A DNA stretch of 64,000 nt from Octopus sinensis (Eukaryota): the NCBI RefSeq assembly GCF_006345805.1, contig NC_042997.1:23002001-23066000 (forward strand). The letters run 5' to 3'. How positions within the stretch are numbered: position 1 is the first letter of the stretch; the number at the start of each line of letters is the position of its first letter. Shown here one piece after another: positions 6,836-64,000 of the stretch. Position numbers and translations under genes: made by a program. The notes beneath the pieces were generated by a model. That model was not told the DNA's origin and made no database searches. It saw only the letters and a list, made by a program, of their open reading frames with translations.

Positions 6836-7866
6836 GTAAATATTATATACTGTATTTTAATTTTTTTTCCTGTTGTAATGTCTCTGTTTTAATATTACTT
6901 CACTGAATTAAAAGAGAACAGTGGTGCTCCTGCATGACCGCAGCCACATGGTTGAAATGAGTAAAAGAGTAAGTCTTGAAAATTTTTTTTTTTTTTTTTT
7001 TGCATTTCAAATCCTTTTATGTCCGCAGTATCTCCATTATCTACTAGCAGAGGTAACCAGCGTTTCCTGGGAATAAAACTGTTCCTTATATATTAGAAGA
7101 AAAAAGGCAAAATATGTTGTTTAGAAATTTGTTATTCTTGATTCAATTTATTCTTCAGTTGAGATACATGATGAAATCAGTTTGCTGTTGTTATGCAGAG
7201 GTCTCTAGAGACCTTATTCTGGCTGCCTGTACTTGTCTTTGCTTCACTGCAGAATATTGGTCATCTACATCTACCTTGTCTCTTTCTGTGGAGAGTGAGA
7301 ACATTTTTCTCAGAAACTATTTTGAAGATCAAAATAGGGATCCAATAAAAAATGAATGAAAGCTACGTGAATATCTTCACAAGAGTGATTGAAATTAATA
7401 GCAATTGTGGAACACCACGTGCACACACACACAAACATCAACGTCTCTTTCTACCCCGCTTTCCCCCCTCTCTTTGTGCCAGCTTTCTTTCACCTTCATC
7501 TATAGAACATACAGTATCAAACATCAGCATCTCCTACTATTCCTCTCTCTTTCAACTTCTTCTATAGAAACTTGTTTTGTCTCTCTGTTTTTTTCTCTCT
7601 TCTTTCTGTCTTTTCTCATTTTGTTTCTCTCTCACCCTCTGTTCCTCTCTTTTAGTCTATGTCTGTTTCTTTCACTCTCTCTCTCTTTCTTTCTAACTCA
7701 CTCACACACACTATTTACATGTCTCCCTCTATCGTAAAACATGGCAAATGAGATTGAGAAGTAGAGCCACTTCCTCACTTAACTTCTCTGTTTCTTTCTC
7801 TCCTCACTCACTCCCTCATTGGCATTAGGCACAGATATACAAATATATATATATATATATATATAT

Positions 7867-9545: not shown

Positions 9546-9857
9546 TGTATTTGTTTTGCAAGATTCTTGTTGTGAAATCATGTGTTGAAACAGATATTGT
9601 TATATTTGGTGATGGTCATTTTTTGCCAATTAAACACATACACTATTTATTTGATTTTCACTTTAGCCTTATTATTATTAATATTTTTAGTTTATTTGTC
9701 AAAGTTCAGAGAGTTGTTAAAGAGATCACAGAATGCATGACAAAAGAACTTTGACAAATAAACTAAAAATATTAATAAGGCTGAAGTGGGGATCAGATAA
9801 ATAGTGCATGTGCTTAATTAGCAAAGGACGACCATCCCCAAACATAACAGTGTTTTT
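9546..9857. mobile_element. Palindromic MITE-like element
   Basis: Arms about 9588-9707 and 9746-9857 are reverse complements; related pieces at about 54480-54710 and 55190-55430. Confidence 0.75.
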
Positions 9858-18268: not shown

Positions 18269-19255
18269 CATCATCATCGTTTAGCGTCCGCTTTCCATGC
18301 TGGCATGGGTTGGACGGTGCAACTGGGGTCTGGGAAGCCAGAAGGCTGCACCAGGCCCAGTCTGATCTGGCAATGTTTCTACGGCTGGATGCCCTTCCTA
18401 ACACCAACCACTCCATGAGTGTAGTGGGTGCTTTTTACGTGCCACCGGCACGGAGGCCAGGCCAGGCTGGCAAACGGCCACGATCGGATGGTGCTTTTTA
18501 CGTGCCACCCGCACGGAGGCCAGTCGGGGCGGCGCTGACAACGGCCACGTTCGGATGGTTCTCTTATGTGCCACCGGCACTGGTATCACAGCTACAATTT
18601 CCATTGATGTTGATCGATTTTGATTTTTGATTTTTTGATTTTCACTTGCCTCAACAGGTCTTCACAAGTAGAGTTTTGTGTCCCAAGAAGGAAAGGTATG
18701 CATAAGTGGACTGGGTTATGGTCTCACTTGTCCTGCCGGGTCTTCTCACGCACAGCATACTTCCAAAGGTCTCGGTCTCTAGTCATTTCCTCGGTGAGAC
18801 CTAAAGTTCGAAGGTCATGCTTCACCACCTCATCCCAGGTTTTCCTGGGTCTGCCTCTTCCACAGGTTCCTTCAACAGCTAGGGTGTGGCACTTTTTTGC
18901 CCAACTATCTTCATCCATTCTCGCCACATGGCTAACCGGCGCAAACGTCTCTCTTGCACACTGCAACTGATGCTTCTTAGGTCTAACTTCTCTCTCAAGG
19001 TACTTACACTCTGTCGAGTATGAACACTGACATTACACATCCATCGGAGCATACTGGCTTCATTTCTTGCGAGCTTACGCATATCCTCAGCAGTCACGGC
19101 CCATGTTTCACTGCCATGTAGCATGGCTGTTCGTACACATGCATCATATAGTCTACCTTTTACTCTGAGCAAGAGGCCTTTTGTCCCCAGCAGGGTAAGA
19201 GCTCTCTGAACTTTGCCCAAGCTATTCTTACTCTAGCAGTTACACTTTCAAAACT
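18269..19255 (-). mobile_element. RTE LINE 3' end: ORF2 C-terminus continuous with tandem-unit 3' UTR and (GAT)n
   Basis: KGRLYDACVRTAMLHGSETW and GRGRPRKTWDEVVKHDLRTLGLTEEMTRDRDLWKYAVREKT, followed by the same tail seen in the short copies. Confidence 0.93.
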
Positions 19256-19379
19256 CCCAAATATTGTTCCATTTTCTTGCTGCTGTTCATGAATCAATTG
19301 CTCAATTGCTTGCTCTTTTTGAATTAACAGCTAAGTTGTTGTTATTATTCAAATGTGGCTTCGTTAACGAAATCTTTTC

Positions 19380-20545
19380 ACACACTCTACCCCAACAAAT
19401 CGCTCTACATTTCTTCTCTTCTTCACATTTCCTCCTTCATATACTATGCTTACCTCTCACTCTCCAATCCTGTCCTCATGGCCCTGTTTCTTGTTTCTTT
19501 ATTGCTCACAAGGAGCTAAACACAGAGGGGACAAACAAAGACAGACAAACGGATTAAGTCGATTATATCGACCCCAGTGCGTAACTGGTACTTAATTTAT
19601 CGACCCCGAGAGGATGAAAGGAAAAGTTGACCTCGGTGGAATTTGAACTCAGAACACAGCGGCAGACGAAATACTGCTAAGCATTTCGCCCGGCCTGCTA
19701 ACGATTCTGCCATGGCCCTGTTTCTCTGTATCATTGCTATCTGGTTGCACCCCCCCCCACTCTGTATACCCAGATTTTTGCCACTCACTTCCCCCTCCCT
19801 CTCCACACTCTCATATCATGCTTCTTTTGCAATATTCTGCCACTTACATTATGACATTCAAACCTCAAAGGTATGCCCTAGCACTTGCCACCATCTATAT
19901 CTCTCTCTTCCTTTACTCAACCATCCCATTTATATTTTGATCCCTGTCCTTTGTGAGTATACCCAGCACTTTGCCACCATCTCTACCCTGCTGTCTCTCT
20001 CTCCTTCTGCTGCTCTTCCTTCAGGTTGGGTAACCATGTATCTCTTTAGCGAAAGCACACCTGTTTCTACCTTCATTCTTGATCTCCCTCTTTCTCTCTG
20101 TCTGGCTGGCTAACCATTTACCTCCTCTACAGCAAGACACCTGTTTCTATCTCTCTGTCTCAATATAACCTTTCATCTGACACAAGATCACCTCCTCCAA
20201 TGTCCCTCACCTCTCAAAGGATTTTTTTGTCTTGCAAGGTACTTGGTGACCCTACCAGTACAAGTACTACTTAAAAAGTATCCAGTCCACACTGTAAAGT
20301 GATTGGTGTTGGGAAGGGCATTGAGTTGTAAAAACCTTGCCAAAACTGACCTTGTCTGTGCTTGTGCCACATGAAAAGCACTAAGTTCACTCTGCTGAGT
20401 GGTTGGTGTTAAGAAGGGCATCCAGCTGTAAAAATCCTACAAAAACAGTCACAGAAGTCTGATGCATGCGTCTTCCTGGCTGGCTCATGTCAAACCATCC
20501 CACCCATGCCAGCAAGGAAGGCAGATGTTAAAAGATAATGATGAA
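19380..20545 (+). mobile_element. CT-rich non-coding element ending in an RTE tail
   Basis: Homologous in reverse to 62896-63395; split by the SINE at 19492-19710. Confidence 0.65.
19492..19710 (-). mobile_element. tRNA-derived SINE, slightly 5'-truncated, 15-bp TSD
   Basis: TSD catggccctgtttct at 19477-19491 and 19711-19725. Confidence 0.9.
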
Positions 20546-43568: not shown

Positions 43569-44330
43569 CTTCCACTACCTAGGCGGCCAAGTCTGTAGTG
43601 GGGGTGGTTGCTCTGAGAGTGTAGCGGCTAGAATAAGAATAGCCTGAGCAAAGTTCAGGGAGATCCTACCTCTGCTGGCAACTAAGGGCTTCTCGCTCAG
43701 GATGAAAGGTAGACTGTATGATGCATGTGTGCGAACTGCCATGCTACATAGCAGTGAAACATGGACCATGACTGCTGAGGACATGTGTAGGTTTGAAAGA
43801 AATGAAGCTAGTATGATCTGCTGGATGTGTAATGTCAGTGTTCATACACGATAGAGTGTAAGTGCCTGGAGACAAAAGCTGGACATAAGAAGCATCAAAT
43901 GTGGTATGCAAGAGAGACAACTGCACTGGTATGGTCATGTATTATGTATGGATGAGGACAGTTGTGTGAGGAAGTGTTACTCCTTAACTGTGGAAGAAAC
44001 CTGTGGAAGTGGTAGACCAGGAAGACAAGGGATGAGGTGGTGAAGCATGACCTCTGAACATTGGGCCTCACCGAGGCAATGACAGGAGACTGAGACCATT
44101 GGAGATATGCTGTGATTGAGAAAACCCGGCAACTAAAGTGAGATCGTAGCCATGGCCAATTCCAGTGTTGCATGTCTGGCCCATTTAAGAGTACCATTGA
44201 TGCATTGGGTGATATGATATGCTTGAGAAGTCCTGTTGAGTCAAGTAAAATCAAAATTGCAGCTGTGGCCAGTGCCCTTTGACTGGCTCCCATTCCAGTA
44301 GCATGTAAAATGCATCATCTGAACATGGCA
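43569..44330 (+). mobile_element. RTE LINE 3' fragment
   Basis: KGRLYDACVRTAMLHSSETW-type frames with stops. Confidence 0.85.
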
Positions 44331-50496: not shown

Positions 50497-51840
50497 CTAG
50501 CAGTATCGCCCGGCGTTGCTCGGGTTTGTAAGGGAAATAACTATATAAGCATTTTTAGAGAGTTATAGCCAAAAGATAGCAAAAAAATGCATTAAAAATT
50601 GAAAAAAAATTAGGTAAATTTTTCTTTAAATCGTTGACACATCGTAGATATTTTTAGAGAGTTACTTCCCTTATATAAAAGCGAAAAAAATGCATTAAAA
50701 TGGAAAAATATGATCGTAATTTTTTTTTAAATCGTAGACTCATCGTAGACGCGCGCTAATACCCTGAAGGGCTCGTTTGTTATTCTGGGTAACTTTCTGT
50801 AAAATTATTAAAATTTTGTTCAAACATCGCTATAGAAAATGGGTTATTAGCTAATATTCAATTGGGTATACAACAAAATTTTACGATAGAATTTGTTATT
50901 CTGGGTAACATTCTGTAAAATTATTAAAATTTTGTTCAAACATCGCTATAGAAAATGGGTTATTAGCTAATATTCAATTGGGTATACAACAAAATTTTAC
51001 GATAGAATTTGTTATTCTGGGTAACATTCTGTAAAATTATTAAAATTTTGTTCAAACATCGCTATAGAAAATGGGTTATTAGCTAATATTCAATTGGGTA
51101 TACAACAAAATTTTACGATAGAATTTGTTATTCTGGGTAACTTTCTGATACCCATAATAATATTTATGGTAAAATAGGCCTTAATTTCATTTAAGGTTGT
51201 GGGAAATAACAAACTATCGTTTCTTTCGTTTTGTTTACGTTTAGCGTAACAGTTCGTTTCTGCCGTAATGATTTCAAATGGGCTCATTCGAAAAAGTAAA
51301 TAGAAATAGCCTAAGGCTTTACCCTTCTGGGAAAGTCTGTGGCTTGGTGCAGTTTCTTCAGAAAAATCACCGAAAGAAACAGTTTTTAAATTTTCACTCC
51401 ATTCAGGTGCTAATTCGTGTTCTTAATCGCTGTCGGATTCACTGTTTTCACTTTAATAGCTGCCAACTTGCAAAGACAAAGGAGGAGAAAGGTGATAGCG
51501 TCAGTGAAACAATTCGCTCCCTTTGTGTGTGTGTGCGTTTGCGTGTGGTGTAAACCAGACTAAGAAAAGCGTTTGACACACACACCAGAATGTGAGTTTT
51601 CTGTAAATTTTGCTTAATTGGAGTTTAAATTTTAAAAACTGGACCTGGCATGACGCGATGCATTGTACTCTTAAAATTGCTAGGTAAATTGTAATTGAAG
51701 AAATCCTATATTGTAGATTTCTATAACTCCCAAAGGGAGGCAAAAATTGCTAGGTAAATTGTAATTGAAGAAATCCTATATTGTAGATTTCTATAACTCC
51801 CAAAGGGAGGCAGATAAAATCTGCCTTTTATAATAAGAGA
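50497..51840 (-). mobile_element. Young non-autonomous Helitron, 1344 bp, with internal tandem arrays
   Basis: Minus strand A|TCTCTTATTA start; cccgagcaacgccggg hairpin then CTAG|T; 116-bp unit x3.2 (50776-51148); 70-bp unit x2 (51673-51812). Confidence 0.9.
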
Positions 51841-55348: not shown

Positions 55349-56410
55349 ATGATTATCCCAAAATATAACAATATCTGTTTCAACACAATTTTACATCAGG
55401 AATCTTGTATAACAAATACAAAAATGTAACTATAACATTTACAATTCATCATCTTCGTTTAACATCCGTTTTCCATGTTGGCATGAGTTGGGCGGTTTGA
55501 CTGAGGTCTGGAGAGCCAGAAAGCTGCATCAGGCTCCAATCTGATCTGGCAATGTTTCTACAGCTGGATTCCCTTCCTAATGCCAACCACTCTGAGAGTG
55601 TAGTGGGTGCTTTTTATGTTCCACCAGCACAGGAGCCAGTCAGACAGGCCTAGCATCAATTGTATTTGGATAGTGCTTTTTATGTGCCACTGGCATGGGG
55701 GCTAGTTAGGGGGTACTGGCATCGGTCACTTTCAGTTGGTGCATTTTACGTGCCACTGGCACGAGAGCCAGTTAGTGGGAACTGGCCACAGCTACGATAT
55801 TGGTTTTACTTTACTCAGCAGGTCTTCTCAAGCATACCATATCGCATGACGCATCAGGGGTACTCTTAACTAGGTCAGACGTGTGGCTGCGATCTCACTT
55901 TAATTGCTGGGTCTTCTCAATCACAGCATATCTCCAAAGGTCTCAGTCTCCTGTCATTGCCTCTGTGAGGCCCAATGTTTGGATGTCATGCTTCACCACC
56001 TCATCCCATGTCTTCCTGGGTCTATCTCTTCCACAGGTTCCTTCCACAATTAAGGAGTGGCACTTCCTCACACAGCTGTCCACATCCATAAATAATACAT
56101 GACCATACCAGTGCAGTTGTCTCTCTTGCACACCACATTTGATGTTTATACCCAACTTTTCTCTCCAGGCACTTATACTCTGTCGTATATGCACACTGAC
56201 ATTACACATCCAGCGGATCATTCTAGCTTCATTTTTTTCAAGCCTACACATGTCCTCAGCAGTCATGGCCCATGTTTCACTGCCGTGTAGCATGGCAGTT
56301 TGCACATATGCATCATACGGTCTACCTTTCATCCTGAGCAAGAGGCCCTTAGTTGCTGCTACACTCTCAGAGCAACTACTCCCATTACAGACTGGGTTGC
56401 CTAGGTAGCA
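54955..56410. mobile_element. RTE cluster: plus tail (54955-55176), MITE piece, minus RTE 3' end (55445-56410)
   Basis: GRPRKTWDEVVKHDIQTLGLTEAMT; AMLHGSETW. Confidence 0.85.
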
Positions 56411-56649: not shown

Positions 56650-57140
56650 AGAATACCCTCCATCAGGCATTTGCCATATTCTGAACGCCTTGCTTCCCTG
56701 GGCATGGACACATTGAAACTCCGACATCTGGCAGCTGACTTGGCAGACACCCATAAAATTATTAACCATCTTACAATCAATAACTCTGAGCACCTTTTCA
56801 AACTCCACCTGTCTAACACCCGTGGACATGTTTACAAAGTCAGAAAACAGCACAGCTCCCATGACTTTCGGAAACATTTTTCACGCTAAGAGTTGCTGAA
56901 GCATGAAACAGACTGCCGGCATCAGTTGTTAATTATCGGAGCACTGCATCTTTCAAAACTTCCATGCTTCCTGAGATTCGCCAACACTACACCTGATTTT
57001 CCCCCCCTCCTTAAACACACAAGCATGTATCTGACTCATACACTGTTCGTTTCCAGACATTTGTACATTACTGCATATACTTTATACGCACTTTTGACAA
57101 GTTGTGGTGCACCTGAGCACTGTATACAATAATTTCATTA
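56650..57140 (+). mobile_element. CR1-clade LINE 3' fragment
   Basis: PYSERLASLGMDTLKLR...NTRGHVYKVRKQHSSHDFRKHF; same family as 27218-27755. Confidence 0.9.
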
Positions 57141-57220
57141 TATATTATATATATATTATATATTTAAATTTTAATACCTAAAACATGATTTTTTAATAAA
57201 TACTTTTGTTTTTATTGCAG

Positions 57221-57348
57221 GAAGGTATTAATATCAACAAATCATTGATGACACTTGGTAAAGTTATTTGTTTACTTTCTGAGGTATCTTCTAACGCAAG
57301 CAAGAAGAAAAAGGTCTTCATCCCATACAGAGATTCTGTATTAACCTG
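57221..57348 (+). CDS. KIF14: KIF14 exon 8
   Basis: cag|...|gtaact; [42 protein letters not shown] + tg (phase 2, Trp codon split). Confidence 0.97.
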
Positions 57349-57469
57349 GTAACTAATTTGTCTTATTTTAAATGTTAACATAAACTTTTACATTTTTCTT
57401 TAAAAACTAAGGAAGAATATTTGTAAACGCATTAAAACATGTGTGCATGCAGGGGTATAGACTTAAACA

Positions 57470-58830
57470 ACATGTCTTTAGGGCCTCATCTTTACTTAGA
57501 CAGATGGGTTTTCTCAAGCGTAGCAAATTGCCAGTCATATCAATCCTTTGTCATATCCTCTGTTAAATTCAACATCCAGATGTAGTTCTTCATCATTTTC
57601 TCATGTTTTCCTAGGTCTCGCTCTTCCACAGATTCCATCCACTTCTTTATGCAGCTGTCCTCATCCATATGCATCTCATGATCATACCAGCACATTCTTC
57701 TTGCTCAATATGGTACCTCTTATGCTCAATTTTCTGATACCTCTTATGCTTGATTTTCTGACACCTCTTATGCCAAATTTTTCTCTCAATACATTTGCAC
57801 TTTGTCTTGCATGTATACTGATGTTGCACATCTAGCAAAAAATGTTAGCTTCATTTCTTTCTTGTCTTCACATGTCTTTGCATTCATATCCCACATTTCA
57901 CTACCATGTAGCACTGCTGTACATACACAGACATCATACAATCTGTCTTCCATTCAGAGAGATATAGACTTTTTTTTTTGCCAACAGTGATAATATCTCT
58001 TAACTTTTTTCATCCTATTCTTATCCTAGCAACTCTCCCTCAGTTAATTAGATCACCTAGGTAGCAATAACAACTACCTCTAAGTAAGGTAGAATGTACT
58101 AGGGTGCTATCAGTAAGGTAAAAGGTAGCTGTCTAAAAGTTAAGTATTGCTAGTACAAAAGCCTATTTTCTTTGGGGTGTATTATTATATCTTTTATTCA
58201 TATTAGAATTATACAGCAATTCTACATGGTAGTGAGACGTGGGGCCTGAATGCAGAGGACATGCAAAGGCTAGAGAGGAACGAGGCTAGTGTGGTCCGCC
58301 ATATGTGTAATATAAGTGTATTTGTTCAATAGTGTGCTAGTGTTTTGAGAGAGAAGTTAGGTATAAGAAGAATTAGATGCTGTGTTCAAGAGAGGAGTGC
58401 ACTGGTATGGTCATGTGATGCAGATGGATATTGACAGCTCCATAGAGAAGTGCTGATCTCTCAAAGGAGATGGAACATGTAGAAGTGGGAGACACAAGAA
58501 TACATGGGATGAAGTGCTGAAGGATGACCTCAGGATGCTCAACCTTTCAGATGAAATGACAGAGATGCCTGGCACTGTCCTCCACAGCAGAAGTGTTAAG
58601 GCTGTTCCTCCTGGTGAAGACAATTGGCTTGCAAGAGTCCTGTACCAGTGCCATGTAAAAGCACCTAGCATGTTCAGTATAGTAGTTGGTGTTAAAAAGG
58701 GTATCCAGCCATAAAAACCATGCCAAATCAGACTGGAGCTTGGTGCAGTTCTCCAGTTTGCCAGCTCAGATCAAACTGTCTGACCCATGCTAGCATGGAC
58801 AACAGATGTTAAATAATGATGATGATGAAT
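57470..58830. mobile_element. Two decayed RTE 3' fragments (minus 57470-58070, plus 58170-58830)
   Basis: ILHGSETW-like and WDEVLKDDLRML motifs; (GAT)n at about 58820. Confidence 0.75.
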
Positions 58831-58928
58831 TATAATTGTTATTCTTACTCAATATAACACTCCAACTGTTTTTTTTTCTGTACATTATTTACATTTGACG
58901 GATATTTGTCCTCATCTTGTTTGTTGTT

Positions 58929-58974
58929 AACACAATGTTTCGGCTGATATACCCTCCAGCCTTCATCAGGTGTC
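58929..58974 (-). ncRNA. Minimal type I hammerhead ribozyme motif in the pLTR
   Basis: GACAC CUGAUGA A GGCUG-loop-CAGCC GAAAC AUU GUGUU; stems I and II intact, helix III has A where G is expected. Confidence 0.75.
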
Positions 58975-59046
58975 TTGGGGAAATTTCAAACCTGGGTTCT
59001 CATTCCTAAGGTATTTTTTGTCGTCATCACCACTGCCACTGTTCAA

Positions 59047-59111
59047 GTCACTGCCTGGAGTCAAACTCGGAATCTTAGGGTTAGTAGCCCATGCTCTTAA
59101 CCACTATGCCA
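59047..59111 (-). other. tRNA-like Pol III promoter head within the Penelope 3' region
   Basis: Minus strand TGGCATAGTGG (A box) ...GAGTTTGACTCC (B box-like), just upstream of the pLTR and hammerhead. Confidence 0.6.
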
Positions 59112-59779
59112 TATACCTTTGGGCAATTATGGAGTGAATTTTAGTGCTTATAATTCTAATATTTTCCTATCCTTCCTTAATACCGGTTCCCATATGCTAT
59201 TCATATCTGCACTCGGTCTGCTTAGGAGGTTGTTGTGTCCTAGCATATGTGCTGCTTCTTTTAGTTTTCGTATTTTCCAATGGTGCTCTCTGTCTATTAT
59301 TTTAACTTCATCCCACAGGGGAAGGTGGTCTCCATTTTTCCATACATGATCAGCTATACCTGATTTATCAATACCTCCTCATGTCACAGCTTTGCGATGT
59401 TCGTCTATCATTATTTTTAGTGGACGGCATGTTTCGCCTTTGTATAATCTACCACAGCTGCATGGGATGGAGTACGGGTCAGATTTTGGTCATATTCTCT
59501 TCTATTGGTGGTTTTATCCGAAGAAGATATTTGCAAAGTGTTGTATTATTCTTGAATACTGTCCTGAAGTCATATGGGCCGCATATCTTCTGTATCTTTT
59601 CAGAGAGGCCTTTCACATAGGGTAGACAGACTGTGGACAGTTTATTGGTTTCATCCTCTCTTTTCTTCATACTATCCAAGATTAATAATAATAATAATAA
59701 TAATAACAATAATAATGATGATGATGATAACATCGAAAAATACCTTAAGAATGAGAACCCAGGTTCGAAATTTCCCCAA

Positions 59780-59825
59780 GACACCTGATAAAGGCTGGAG
59801 GGTATATCAGCCAAAACATTGTGTT
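59780..59825 (+). ncRNA. Hammerhead motif, mutated copy (sense to KIF14)
   Basis: GACAC CUGAUaA A GGCUG...CAGCC aAAAC AUU GUGUU. Confidence 0.65.
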
Positions 59826-59973
59826 AACAACAAACAAGATGAGGACAAATATCCGTCAAATGTAAACAATTTACATAATTCCTCATCTCTTAAATATAGA
59901 ACTGTATTAGATTATAATGGAATTGAAGGTTTAGATACCTGTGGAGTATCTCCTTCTCGCATTATAATTATTT

Positions 59974-60973
59974 TGTAGTTTCAAGGAGCTGGAATGGGTC
60001 GCCGATTTGTGACATCCGTGCGAAGCAAGGTGATGAGAATGGCTCCTTAGTACATCACACAGTCAATACAATAAATATAAATAGAACAACGCATATATGT
60101 GTCAGAGGGAAATAAGAGACACAACCAGGTAGAATGTTTAAGAGAAGATTTATTGATATGTTAACATGTGTGATTGTGTGTGTGTCGTATATACAGAATA
60201 ATAGACAGGCCATCATAAGAACAAGATGTATGCGTGTGTATGTAGGCATAGATGTATGCATGTTAAGAATATACAAGGATGGCGATGAAGAAGAAACAGT
60301 GAAAGAGTCTATAGCCATCGAAGTGAGGAGTAAGTTCATAGATGCAAGAATGGTGAACACCAGTTCGTAGTCAATTGTACACAGTAGTTGAAATACTGTA
60401 TCAAGAAGTTGTGGCGATAGTGCAGAGTCAGTTGCGGTATATGTCGTATGTGAAGTTGTGGCTGTGATGCTGCTGACTGGGTCACTTGGTACAGGAGTTC
60501 TCGCAGGTTGTATATTCATTGTTGATCCATGGTAAAGTAGTTCATGAACAGTGCAGTGTTGTAACCTGGGTGAGTTGTGTACGTAGAGAGATGTTAACTT
60601 TAGGACAAATGGTGGCGGCAGAGATGGAGGTCGCTGAATGCTGTTGGACGAAGTTGAGGAGTCTCCATGTGGCTGCTGTTGTGTTGTCACTGGAATTGGC
60701 AGTGTCTTGTGTGGTCAGTGGCCAGTCCTTAAAAGGTCTGGAACTGAATGACCTCGAGACAAGGAAAAGTTAAGTTTTTTATAAGGAGTTGTAGGCTCAG
60801 CTGAGGTAGAAAAACAGGCTATCACACGTGACCTTATTTGAAGGCTGCGATTGGTTGGGTTGCATATTAGCGTGCGATAGAGCAAGAGACAAATTGAGCC
60901 AATACCAACCAATCAGAGTAGTGGACACAACAGTGTCCAAAATGCGGCCGAAGGCTAGCTGTTATCTACTACG
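59974..60973 (-). mobile_element. Probable solo LTR (about 1 kb)
   Basis: TGTAGT...ACTACG termini (5/6 inverted match); minus-strand CCAAT at 60850-60854, TATAAAA at 60777-60783, AATAAA near 60149-60154; no clean TSD. Confidence 0.5.
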
Positions 60974-61553
60974 TTTGTATGTATATATAATAGAGAGGAG
61001 AGGAATTTCACTCAAATATACACTACAAGCTAATTAATTACTATAGAAAAAAGCATTAATCTTCAGATTTAAATGGTATATAAGAGAAATTTTAGATTTT
61101 TATGTGTTAGAAAAATTCAAATATTTGTAATTTAATTTTTGGTAGTCATTTTCACTTCTTTTTTTCTTTCAACTTTAATTTTTTCATGAAGATAATTAAA
61201 AATACCTTTAAAAATGTTTGTCAGGTCAGTCATTTCATTAAAGAAAAAAGACCATCTATTGTGCTTTTCTTTTGTAATTATTTTCATACAGATACTCATA
61301 GTTTTAACAATTTAATTTCTTTATAATAATTTCAAATTTGTTTTCATAGCAAGACCAACTTTCCCAATTTTAAATCATTTTTGGCAAAAACGAAGACATA
61401 TATTATTAAAAATAATTTCACTGACCCCTTCTCCTTTACCAGAATCCCATACAGTCATGAGCTTTGTAATTCCTTTTCCTATTGATGTTAAAATTTTTAA
61501 AATAAGTCAAAATGTCTTTATCACTAATGAATTCCATATAATTATTCCCAGAG

Positions 61554-61653
61554 ACTATTAAAAGAAAATTTGGGTGGGAATTCTCATACAACAATGCTTG
61601 CTACCATAAGCCCGGCAAGTATTCATTAGGATGAACTTTTATTATACTGTCAG
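61554..61653 (+). pseudogene. KIF14: Degenerate tandem duplicate of KIF14 exon 9 (exon 9A; relic or poison exon)
   Basis: [26 protein letters not shown]; 59/72 nt identical to exon 9 over the first 24 codons; acceptor cccagag|, donor-like ATATCATT at 61654; TGA formed at the exon 8 junction, TAG 61627-61629, 100 nt vs 99 nt. Confidence 0.9.
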
Positions 61654-61693
61654 ATATCATTTTAGTGTCACTGAGCATATTTTCTTTCCAAAG

Positions 61694-61792
61694 GTTGTTA
61701 AAAGAAAGTCTTGGTGGGAATTCTCGAACAGCAATGCTTGCTACCATCAGCCCTGCTAATATTCACTGTGAAGAGACTCTAAGTACTCTCAG
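61694..61792 (+). CDS. KIF14: KIF14 exon 9 (9B), ending at a U12 donor
   Basis: aag|; (W)[32 protein letters not shown] + ag, followed by ATATCCTTTT instead of GT. Confidence 0.95.
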
Positions 61793-62727
61793 ATATCCTT
61801 TTATTGCCATCACTTTCTTTTATTTTATCATCATTTCATTCATTACATGAGAAGTAATACCAAAAATATCAAAGCATCCTTAATTTCCGGTTTTAAATTA
61901 TTATATATAATTTTTTTTTTCGTAATTATTTCTATTTTTCTTGCAGTTAATGTTTTAGGGTTTAATTTTAATTTCATCATTTTAAAATCTACTTTGTTTT
62001 TTTCAGATCTTCATTTTATATTTTCTTTAGCCTATTACTCCTACCTTGCAAATTTTATTGTCTCATTTTAGATATACCATATATTTTTGAGTTGTACTCA
62101 CTTGGAAAATGCATTGGCGTGTGAGATAGTTTGCTGAATCTGAAGTGATTATGTTGTGGAAGAGTTCGTTTATTTATTTATGAAGACACAAAAATTGTTA
62201 CATTCACTTTTAGTTATTTCTTAATAGTAATGTCTATTTAAAAAAAAAAAAAAATCTTATTGTCAGGTGGGAAGACAGCATCCATGACTGTTTATAGGAT
62301 CTTTGAGGTTGAGGGTGGGAGATATCCTCAATCTAGAGACCTGGCTTGAATGCTTGCAAAGGAAGTGAACTCCACCAAAGTTACTCAAAGTACTAGACAC
62401 TGGTGTTAAGTCAAGTGATGGATCAAGGCAAGAAATTTTGTTGCACTCCTGCGACCTGGTCACTGACACAATTCCAGTGCAGTGAAATTTTGTCAGAAGT
62501 TAATCAAGGATTTTTGACACTTCATGATAGACAGTAATACATGAAAAGTAAATATAACAGCTTTGGGGTATTTGTAAGTGGTTAAAATAACTCTTCTACA
62601 TTGTAATCAAATTATCAAAGAGTGGAAGCTGCAAGAATTTTTGAATTTATTGAGATTTTTAAAAAATGATAGTGGGTTTTTTTTTCTTCTTGTTTTATTA
62701 TATATTATATTCTTTAATGTGCCTTAA
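61793..62727 (+). other. KIF14: U12-type (minor spliceosome) intron with AT-AA termini, 935 nt
   Basis: 5' site ATATCCTT matches the U12 consensus exactly; branch-like TTCTTTAAT at 62710-62718, about 10 nt before the 3' end; ends ...gccttAA|a tat gct, which restores the conserved TLRYA. Confidence 0.88.
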
Positions 62728-62801
62728 ATATGCTCAGCAAGCTAGCTGTATTGTGAATCGTGTCCGAATCAATGAAGATACGAAAAGTAAAAAGATTCAA
62801 G
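62728..62801 (+). CDS. KIF14: KIF14 exon 10 (motor end/neck)
   Basis: (R)YAQQASCIVNRVRINEDTKSKKIQ + g|gttaga, cf. human RYANQARLIVNIAKVNED. Confidence 0.92.
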
Positions 62802-62895
62802 GTTAGAGAATTTAGTTTTTTTAAGTTATTTTTAATAATTCTCATTTATATATTTCAAAGTATTTATATTCCAGTTATTGATTTTGGTATCTATC

Positions 62896-64000
62896 ATCAT
62901 CATCATCTTTGTTTAACGCCCTCCTTCCATACTGGCATGGGTTGGATGGTTTGACAAGAGCTGGCCAGGCAGGAGCCTACACCAAACTCCTGTGTCTGTT
63001 TTGGCATGGCTTTTATGGCGGGATGCCCTTTCTAATACCAACCACCCTGCAGAGTGGGAGATAGCAAGAGAGAGATGGCAGTGAAAGGTAATCTCACAAT
63101 GTACAGGGATCAGAGCATAAATGGGATGGTAGAGTAAGGAAGAAAGAGATAGATGGTGGCAGGTGCCATCAAGGTATTGCCAAGGTGGGGGTAGGGGAAT
63201 GTTGTAACTGGTGAGAACCTGGGTATATAGAGGGGGTGGGGAAAGCAACAATACAGTGAGCAGGGTAGTGAGGACAGGATTGAAGAGTGGGAGGTAATCG
63301 TAGTGTATGAAGAGGAAATGTGAGGAAAAGAAGAGATAGTTTTGGAGAGGAAATGTAATTTGATTTGTTGGGGTAGGGTGGGTGGAACACAACACTTCTA
63401 GAACTCAGGTTCACTGATGTGGGTGGATCTTCTCTAGAACCTCTTATTGCCAGATATCTCAGTCCATTGTTATTTCCTCTGTGAGCCCCAACATCCTGAG
63501 ATCGGTCCTCACCACTTCATCCCATGTCTTCCTGGGTCTCCCTCTTCCACAGGTACCATCGACTTTCATTTTTATATATTTAGTGATCTTCACATAAAGG
63601 GCGATATACTGTGCTTGTGAAAACCTGTCGAGCCAAGTGAAATTGTAGTCATGGCTGATGCCAGTGCCGACTGCCTGGCATGTAAAAAGCACCATTTGTG
63701 CGTTGGGCCTCGTGGAGGCAGTGACAGGTGTCCAAGACCTTTGGCTATACACTGCGCTGTGTAGACCTGCCAAGCCAAGTGAAACCGTAGTTGTGACCAG
63801 TGTCAGTATCAGATCAGTGGCACCTGTGCTGGCAGCACATAAAAACACCAACTACACTCTTGGAGTGGTTAGCATTAGGAAGGGCATCAGCCATAGAAAT
63901 CTTACCAAATTAGATCGAAACCTGGTGCAGCTCTTCAGCTGACCAGTTTTCAATCAAACCGTCCAACACATGCTAGCATGGAAAACAGATGTTAAATGAT
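62896..64000. mobile_element. CT-rich RTE-tail element (minus, 62896-63395), RTE ORF-end piece (minus), RTE 3' UTR (plus, to window end)
   Basis: Homology to 19380-20545; GTCGRGRPRKTWDEVVRTDLRML; tail ggaaaacagatgttaaatgat. Confidence 0.78.

Follow-up and report, generated by a model that had tools for sequence, protein, structure and literature searches.

Within the 64,000-nt stretch of Octopus sinensis DNA analyzed here (the window), one exon of a kinesin gene is present twice, and the locus raises the question of whether the upstream copy, 9A, is or ever was an exon with a function of its own. The earlier note on this DNA had described the pair as mutually exclusive exons with a U2-type acceptor and a U12-type donor, the upstream copy being now a poison or relic exon. 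From the comparisons described below, we conclude that 9A is probably an inert pseudo-exon, the relic of a tandem duplication that has been found so far only in Octopus.

The kinesin motifs placed a motor domain on the + strand between 38.3 and 62.8 kb of the window, and homology searches confirmed that the gene is KIF14, as had been proposed. The mollusc, annelid and bryozoan matches were 59–68% identical, and a motor-domain query padded with X to 1084 aa retrieved the proteins of O. vulgaris (97% identical), O. bimaculoides (96%) and Argonauta hians (90%). Among the 120 matches listed there was no KIF14 from squid, cuttlefish, Nautilus or a further octopod, and exact look-ups of the P-loop exon ORF and of the 9B ORF gave no match in the contig collection. 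The locus used for O. sinensis in the comparisons (L005, GCA_006345805.1) is 100% identical to the window.

The features of the region, with their positions in the window, are as follows.

57221–57348, + strand: KIF14 coding exon 8, ending with the TG of a Trp codon at the U2-type GT donor CTG|gtaact.
61522–61528, + strand: CACTAAT, candidate U2 branch site ~27 nt upstream of the 9A acceptor (TACTAAT in O. bimaculoides).
61542–61681, + strand: duplication unit A, ~140 bp, comprising the 3′ end of intron 8, 9A and ~22 nt of the copied start of the U12 intron.
61554–61653, + strand: putative pseudo-exon 9A, 100 nt against 99 nt for 9B; exon 8 joined to its first base, A, reads TGA, and an in-frame TAG lies at 61627–61629.
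61654–61661, + strand: degenerate U12-like donor of 9A, ATATCATT, with C changed to A at intron position +6, common to three Octopus species.
61654–61693, + strand: 40-nt spacer, including the 9B pyrimidine tract TTTTCTTTCC and the 9B AG acceptor.
61669–61675, + strand: CACTGAG, candidate branch site within the spacer (CACTGAT in O. bimaculoides).
61694–61792, + strand: functional coding exon 9 (9B), 99 nt, used in the RefSeq join, with a split R codon at its 3′ end.
61793–62727, + strand: U12-type intron, 935 nt, with AT-AA termini, the donor ATATCCTT at 61793–61800 and the branch-site-like TTCTTTAAT at 62710–62718.
62728–62801, + strand: KIF14 coding exon 10, reading (R)YAQQASCIVNRVRINEDTKSKKIQ, with the GT donor CAAG|gttaga.

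The region 61542–61821 is a tandem duplication with a period of ~140 bp that holds KIF14 coding exon 9 in two copies, 9A (61554–61653, 100 nt) and 9B (61694–61792, 99 nt). The direct repeat falls into two blocks that are offset by one base: 61542–61634 against 61682–61774 (93 nt, 78% identity, spacing 140 nt) and 61645–61670 against 61784–61809 (26 nt, 85% identity, spacing 139 nt). In each unit, an exon-sized segment is preceded by ~12 nt of acceptor flank and followed by ~22 nt of downstream intron, so that the homology between the tandem copies reaches both splice-site flanks. The first 72 nt of 9A are 82% identical to 9B, and the last 27 nt are scrambled. In the orthologous loci, cross-matches between 9A and 9B reached BLAST E values down to ~1e-21, far past chance. 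The candidate branch site CACTAAT at 61522 is not part of the duplicated unit; it is probably the one that intron 8 had originally. The anatomy given in the earlier note is correct in these respects: exon 9 is present twice at a 140-nt period (140/139 nt as measured) with a 40-nt spacer, CACTAAT (61522), CACTGAG (61669), TAG (61627), ATATCATT (61654) and ATATCCTT (61793) are all where it had placed them, and a recount over 24 codons also gave six synonymous and four non-synonymous differences.

Joining exon 8 to 9B and 10 yielded a translation that matches residues 318–417 of RefSeq XP_029645137.1 exactly. The RefSeq protein of O. bimaculoides is joined in the same way, and the RefSeq models of both species use 9B only. 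Between these two species 9B differs at 2 of 99 nt, both differences being synonymous. We therefore take 9B, as read from the sequence and the gene models, to be the exon in use. Exon 8 ends in ...ACC TG|gtaact, where the first base of 9B, G, completes the Trp codon, and the first base of 9A, A, gives TGA. A transcript without exon 9 (8 joined to 10) already terminates at a stop. As skipping of exon 9 leads to a stop, KIF14 would be coupled to minor-intron splicing without any contribution of 9A, as is any gene with a minor intron.

We then consider the intron between 9B and exon 10, on which the proposed exclusion of the two copies depends. The RefSeq join demands an intron running from 61793 (ATATCCTT...) to 62727 (...TTCTTTAATGTGCCTTAA), and exon 10 begins at 62728 with ATATGCTCAG; because of this start the termini are AT-AA and not AT-AC. 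The 5′ splice site reads AG|ATATCCTT. Taking a U12 branch site as a motif near TTCCTTAAC at 10–15 nt from the 3′ splice site, we observed TTCTTTAAT, which has two mismatches to it and places the branch A ~10 nt from the 3′ end. Argonauta has an intron of identical codon position and phase, AG|ATATCCTTT ... TCCTTTAACACTTGTTAA| with AT-AA ends, and so does the mussel Potamilus, where it reads CG|ATATCCTTT ... TTTTCTTAACCATGTAAAC|, a textbook AT-AC intron. The branch motif is TCCTTTAAC in Argonauta and TTTCTTAAC in Potamilus, at a distance to the 3′ end as in Octopus. Thus, the termini are AT-AA in 4/4 octopods (Argonauta and three Octopus species) and AT-AC in Potamilus.

The presence of ATATCCTT by itself was set aside as evidence, since this octamer occurs in the window at chance frequency (3 found, 3.4 expected); the U12 case rests on position, on conservation across species and on the RefSeq join. 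AT-AA is a recognized rare subtype of minor introns, the commonest non-canonical one, and switching between AT-AC and AT-AA among orthologues has been documented (PMC1557818; PMC10639083). Judged from these features, the intron between 9B and exon 10 is a genuine U12-type intron of the A-type (AT-AN). The assignment of a U2-type AG acceptor and a U12-type AT donor to 9B is therefore upheld by the donor, the branch-like motif and the position shared across species. Our literature search found no paper with both 'KIF14' and 'U12-type'.

The intron has a distribution and an annotation history of its own. At the LR|YA position of KIF14, a U12-type intron was present in all the sampled molluscs, as AT-AC in Potamilus and as AT-AA in Argonauta and the three Octopus species. 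It was absent, exons 9 and 10 being fused, in the annelid Owenia, the brachiopod Lingula, amphioxus and the spotted gar. The corresponding intron or fused-exon sites are 61793–62727 of the window, 18961–20148 of locus L002, 41594–42586 of L001, ~5070–5239 of L006, 2390–2560 of L007, 7302–7472 of L008 and 14196–14366 of L009. This pattern reflects either a molluscan gain of a minor intron or at least two to three independent losses, and the mollusc-limited KIF14 intron might serve to study whether minor introns are gained or repeatedly lost. The exon 9/10 junction is correct in the RefSeq models of O. sinensis and O. bimaculoides. The O. vulgaris protein CAI9714843.1 loses STLRYAQQA at this junction (EETL-TSCIVN), and the Argonauta hians protein GAB1597550.1 reads into the AT-AA intron (STLRYPFLSSCIVN). 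These errors are what a predictor restricted to GT-AG introns would give. They carry a lesson for annotation: an AT-AA intron was misannotated, and a conserved motor motif, STLRYAQQA, was deleted in one protein set and garbled in the other.

As for the state of 9A, we observed four lesions, namely the TGA at the exon 8 junction, an in-frame stop (TAG, codon 25), one extra base and a degraded donor, ATATCATT, in which the core consensus C at +6 has been lost (C>A). The spliced translations agree with the TGA, the TAG at 61627 and the +1 frameshift that had been reported, and they also bear out the claim that inclusion of 9A yields a premature stop: every transcript form containing 9A stops at the exon 8 junction, whichever of the two AG acceptors is used, with or without 9B, and also with the spacer retained. 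The longest pyrimidine run is 5 for 9A versus 10 for 9B. The two AGs of the 9A acceptor, and likewise its donor ATATCATT, have been kept in three Octopus species. On the reading-frame evidence, 9A is now non-coding.

Two other ways in which the region might act were considered and rejected. Folding of 61510–61830 gave no excess RNA structure (z = −0.30 versus shuffled sequence), which does not fit an RNA-structure mechanism with docking and selector sites, as in Dscam; the short purine/pyrimidine complementarities seem to be chance matches of low complexity. The idea of a hidden non-coding RNA was dismissed because 57000–64000 had no Rfam match at E up to 1. The minus strand of the region has short ORFs only.

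The next issue is what the arrangement of the two copies means. The spacer, 61654–61693, starts with ATATCATT, the degraded U12 donor, and ends with TTTTCTTTCCAAAG, a U2 acceptor, and no U12 branch-site motif is present in these 40 nt. With a U12-like donor, a U2 acceptor and no U12 branch site between them, 9A cannot join 9B. The statement that such joining would need a U12 donor paired with a U2 acceptor over 40 nt thus follows from the spacer sequence itself, and 40 nt is, we presume, too short for a spliceable intron. Exclusion by U2/U12 incompatibility is limited to rare clusters of two exons, and spatial constraints on the intervening intron are a further exclusion mechanism (PMC6071210). 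As exon 9 precedes a U12 intron, any tandem copy of it that carries its splice sites yields a U2-acceptor/U12-donor pair. The JNK-like layout is therefore an automatic by-product of the duplication and is no evidence of regulation or of selection. Accordingly, of the claim that the two exons are wired for mutual exclusion we retain the layout and not its regulatory meaning, which is the default result of a duplication before a U12 intron.

We compared the locus with those of other species to place the duplication and the lesions in time. In O. vulgaris the 9A/9B pair is identical to that of the window, with all four lesions. O. bimaculoides also has both copies and all four lesions; here the 9A stop is TAA in place of TAG, and the last bases of 9A are CTG in place of CAG. 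Since the lesions are common to O. sinensis, O. vulgaris and O. bimaculoides, both the duplication and the inactivation predate the split of O. sinensis and O. bimaculoides. In Argonauta hians, exon 9 is single and sensitive BLAST found no upstream relic of 9A; Potamilus has a single complete exon 9 and no 9A. The orthologous alignment that had been suggested as a check thus recovered the 9A pair in three Octopus species, none of them with an intact 9A, and showed that 9A is absent in Argonauta. No sampled species has an intact 9A.

As judged from one Argonauta genome, the duplication would be either younger than the Octopus–Argonauta split or lost in Argonauta. With Potamilus as the second outgroup, 5 sites fitted a duplication later than the split and 3 an earlier one. 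The 9A lineage has accumulated 0.19–0.22 substitutions per site, ~7 times the per-lineage intronic distance between O. sinensis and O. bimaculoides (0.029). Because of this rate on the 9A lineage, an origin after the split is favored. Exon 9B differs from Argonauta exon 9 at 21/99 sites with one amino-acid change, which means that the silent sites between them are heavily diverged.

To judge constraint on 9A, we used the intronic divergence between O. sinensis and O. bimaculoides as the background (0.0556 substitutions per site, 14,472 aligned sites). Over this distance 9A has 3 substitutions in 100 nt (0.030 per site) and no indels, and the spacer has 1 substitution in 40 nt. The divergence of 9A is nominally below that of the flanking intron (0.030 vs 0.056 per site), but not significantly so. 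Among the alignable 100-nt intron windows of KIF14, 24% had three or fewer substitutions, and 10% had three or fewer and no indel; the empirical one-sided P is thus 0.24, or 0.10 if the windows have also to be indel-free. Against intron windows of the same gene, 9A shows no significant sign of constraint, and it diverges at the intronic rate.

These results suggest the following history. A tandem duplication of ~140 bp would have copied KIF14 exon 9 in an ancestor common to the three Octopus species, and the copied unit would have taken in some 12 bases from the end of the upstream U2 intron together with the first ~22 bases of the U12 intron. Each copy would at first have had its own U2 AG acceptor and U12 AT donor, the spacer between the copies being too short and too mismatched for splicing, so that a single copy could be used per transcript. 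The downstream 9B presumably kept the motor-domain role, while 9A would have decayed into an intronic pseudo-exon through the stops, the 1-nt insertion, the loss of the donor C and a poor pyrimidine tract. Lying now within the 4.3-kb U2 intron 8, 9A is most likely ignored by the splicing machinery, and it would be skipped in vivo. The disabling lesions are fixed and common to the related species, the divergence of 9A fits neutrality, and 9A is restricted to one lineage (5 vs 3 sites for its timing relative to Argonauta). In the title of the earlier note, the relic half is therefore sustained by the lesions and the intronic divergence, and the poison half is not, as there is no significant excess of conservation.

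The alternative that survives best, although we consider it unlikely, is that 9A was once a working mutually exclusive exon providing a second motor variant in the style of JNK 6a/6b, and lost this function before the split of O. sinensis and O. bimaculoides. The architecture would enforce mutual exclusion from the duplication onward, and the 82% identity over the first 72 nt, next to the scrambled last 27 nt, is in line with it. A further argument for it comes from the substitutions themselves: on the 9A lineage, codons 1–24 have 5 silent versus 4 replacement codons (simulation P = 0.04–0.08), in a 24-codon window that was chosen post hoc and that leaves out the scrambled last nine codons. 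One of the silent changes, CCT>CCG, occurs in O. sinensis and O. vulgaris only and thus arose after the shared lesions; without it the P value rises to 0.11–0.18. When the first 79 nt were polarized with Argonauta, 13 changes were 9A-specific and 2 were 9B-specific, and the 9A-specific changes were spread 2/4/7 by codon position, which is not significant either (chi-square P ~0.2). The lack of an intact 9A in any sampled species also stands against a former function, and the 0.19–0.22 substitutions per site on the 9A lineage can be explained without a constrained period.

Overall, the synonymous excess is not significant as a sign of selection (P ~0.04–0.18). A weak excess and a 2/4/7 codon-position spread do not carry the claim that 9A was once a functional alternative motor segment. 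The KIF1-like residues that had been read as a functional sign do not help, as the N and the D, which are KIF1A-like, are each a single-base change on a copy derived from 9B. An origin of 9A from a KIF1-type gene, or its conversion by one, was also rejected: the flanks of 9A copy those of 9B, and 9A shares several silent states with 9B against Argonauta and Potamilus. We infer that 9A was never a selected alternative exon.

It is more improbable still that 9A is a poison or decoy exon in current use, which would lower KIF14 through NMD, possibly in step with minor-spliceosome activity. Inclusion of 9A does bring a premature stop codon, its AG acceptor and U12-like donor are kept in three species, and it has no indels and a nominally lower divergence than the intron. 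Well-studied poison exons are typically far more conserved than their flanks. We observed no such excess for 9A and its flanks over the surrounding intron (P 0.24 and 0.10), the conservation of 9A being indistinguishable from that of ordinary intron. Moreover, the donor has lost its core C, the pyrimidine tract is weak (a run of 5), the last exon bases have changed from CAG to CTG in O. bimaculoides, and the RefSeq models of two species contain 9B only. A coupling to the minor spliceosome does not need 9A at all, as skipping of exon 9 already gives a stop. Hence the proposal that a poison exon couples the KIF14 level to minor-spliceosome activity fails on the intron-like divergence, the degraded donor and the 9B-only models.

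A low-level regulated inclusion of 9A, or its action as a U2AF/U11 decoy, would make it an Octopus-specific poison exon that tunes a cytokinesis kinesin and is linked to minor-spliceosome activity; going by the sequence, we regard this as very improbable. If 9A were used in this manner, it would be a rare case of a recently born poison exon built on minor-spliceosome signals. An assembly artefact, conceivable as a general possibility only, has a negligible chance, and the earlier note had also called it unlikely: the copies are only ~78% identical, three assemblies made independently, one for each Octopus species, contain the pair, and O. bimaculoides has species-specific differences in both copies. 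Taken together, the sequence comparisons gave no sign that 9A ever worked as an alternative exon or is a poison exon now, and the inert relic of a tandem duplication stays the preferred reading.

Several further observations were made at and around the KIF14 loci. In Lingula anatina a 1.3-kb segment is present twice (L008 7127–8400 and 9393–10664, 87% identity). Each copy has a complete fused exon 9/10 (7302–7472 and 9569–9739) with intact AG and GT sites; these exons are identical at 162/171 nt, and 9/9 differences are synonymous. The annotated Lingula KIF14 protein uses the duplicated segment once, and the pair represents either a genuine tandem exon duplication, in which both copies are under constraint, or uncollapsed haplotypes. 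In Potamilus streckersoni KIF14 (L001 41200–41514), a 48-nt unit is repeated 6.6 times with 93% matches. The unit contains the acceptor of exon 9 (ACAG|) together with the exon's first 23 nt, so that decoy 3′ splice sites are lined up immediately before the real exon 9. These local duplications of the exon 9 region in Potamilus and Lingula are independent of the Octopus one. Together with the mollusc-limited U12 intron, they may outweigh the finding on exon 9A.

In the window itself, 43678–44323 and 55731–56356 are inverted copies of a ~640-bp repeat, 86% identical and ~11.4 kb apart, which sit in the introns flanking KIF14 coding exons 4–7; paired within the pre-mRNA, they could give a long double-stranded RNA. 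In intron 5, O. sinensis has 1.34 kb (50497–51839) that O. vulgaris and O. bimaculoides lack at the orthologous position; this is probably a recent insertion. At 62893–63057 there is a ~150-nt repeat, probably a SINE-like element, that starts with (ATC)5; many diverged copies of it (68–88% identical, both orientations) occur in the KIF14 loci of O. vulgaris and Argonauta.

Finally, the locus can be compared with four known systems. Among minor introns, the one between 9B and exon 10 resembles the AT-AA U12-type introns in its ATATCCTT donor, its branch-like motif 10 nt from the 3′ end and its AT-AA ends, and differs by the two branch mismatches (TTCTTTAAT vs TTCCTTAAC). Exons 6a and 6b of the vertebrate JNK genes (MAPK8/9/10) are mutually exclusive through U2/U12 incompatibility, and both are open, equal in length, conserved and used. 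Like 9A and 9B, they are tandem homologous exons, each with a U2-type acceptor and a U12-type donor, which leaves between them an unremovable intron with a U12 5′ site and a U2 3′ site. Unlike them, the KIF14 copies are not compatible in length and frame (100 nt vs 99 nt, with the TGA junction and an internal TAG or TAA), and 9A has stops, a frameshift and a degraded donor. Purifying selection does not extend to both KIF14 copies, 9A being intron-like in its rate and absent in Argonauta, and the available protein models contain 9B only. In alpha-tropomyosin, exons 2 and 3 are subject to steric exclusion by a short intervening intron, which the 40-nt KIF14 spacer recalls, but that exclusion acts on two functional exons and is moot in KIF14 with 9A dead.

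The closest likeness is to the pseudo-exons that arise by tandem duplication. Mutually exclusive exons usually evolve by tandem exon duplication, and so do the failed ones. As in such cases, 9A and 9B are a local copy that carries its flanks along, with one copy retained and one damaged, in a restricted lineage; the KIF14 case is unusual only in that the exon lies directly before a U12-type AT-AA intron. It thus offers a natural 'failed' case of the origin of mutually exclusive exons, in which JNK-type wiring comes free with the duplication.
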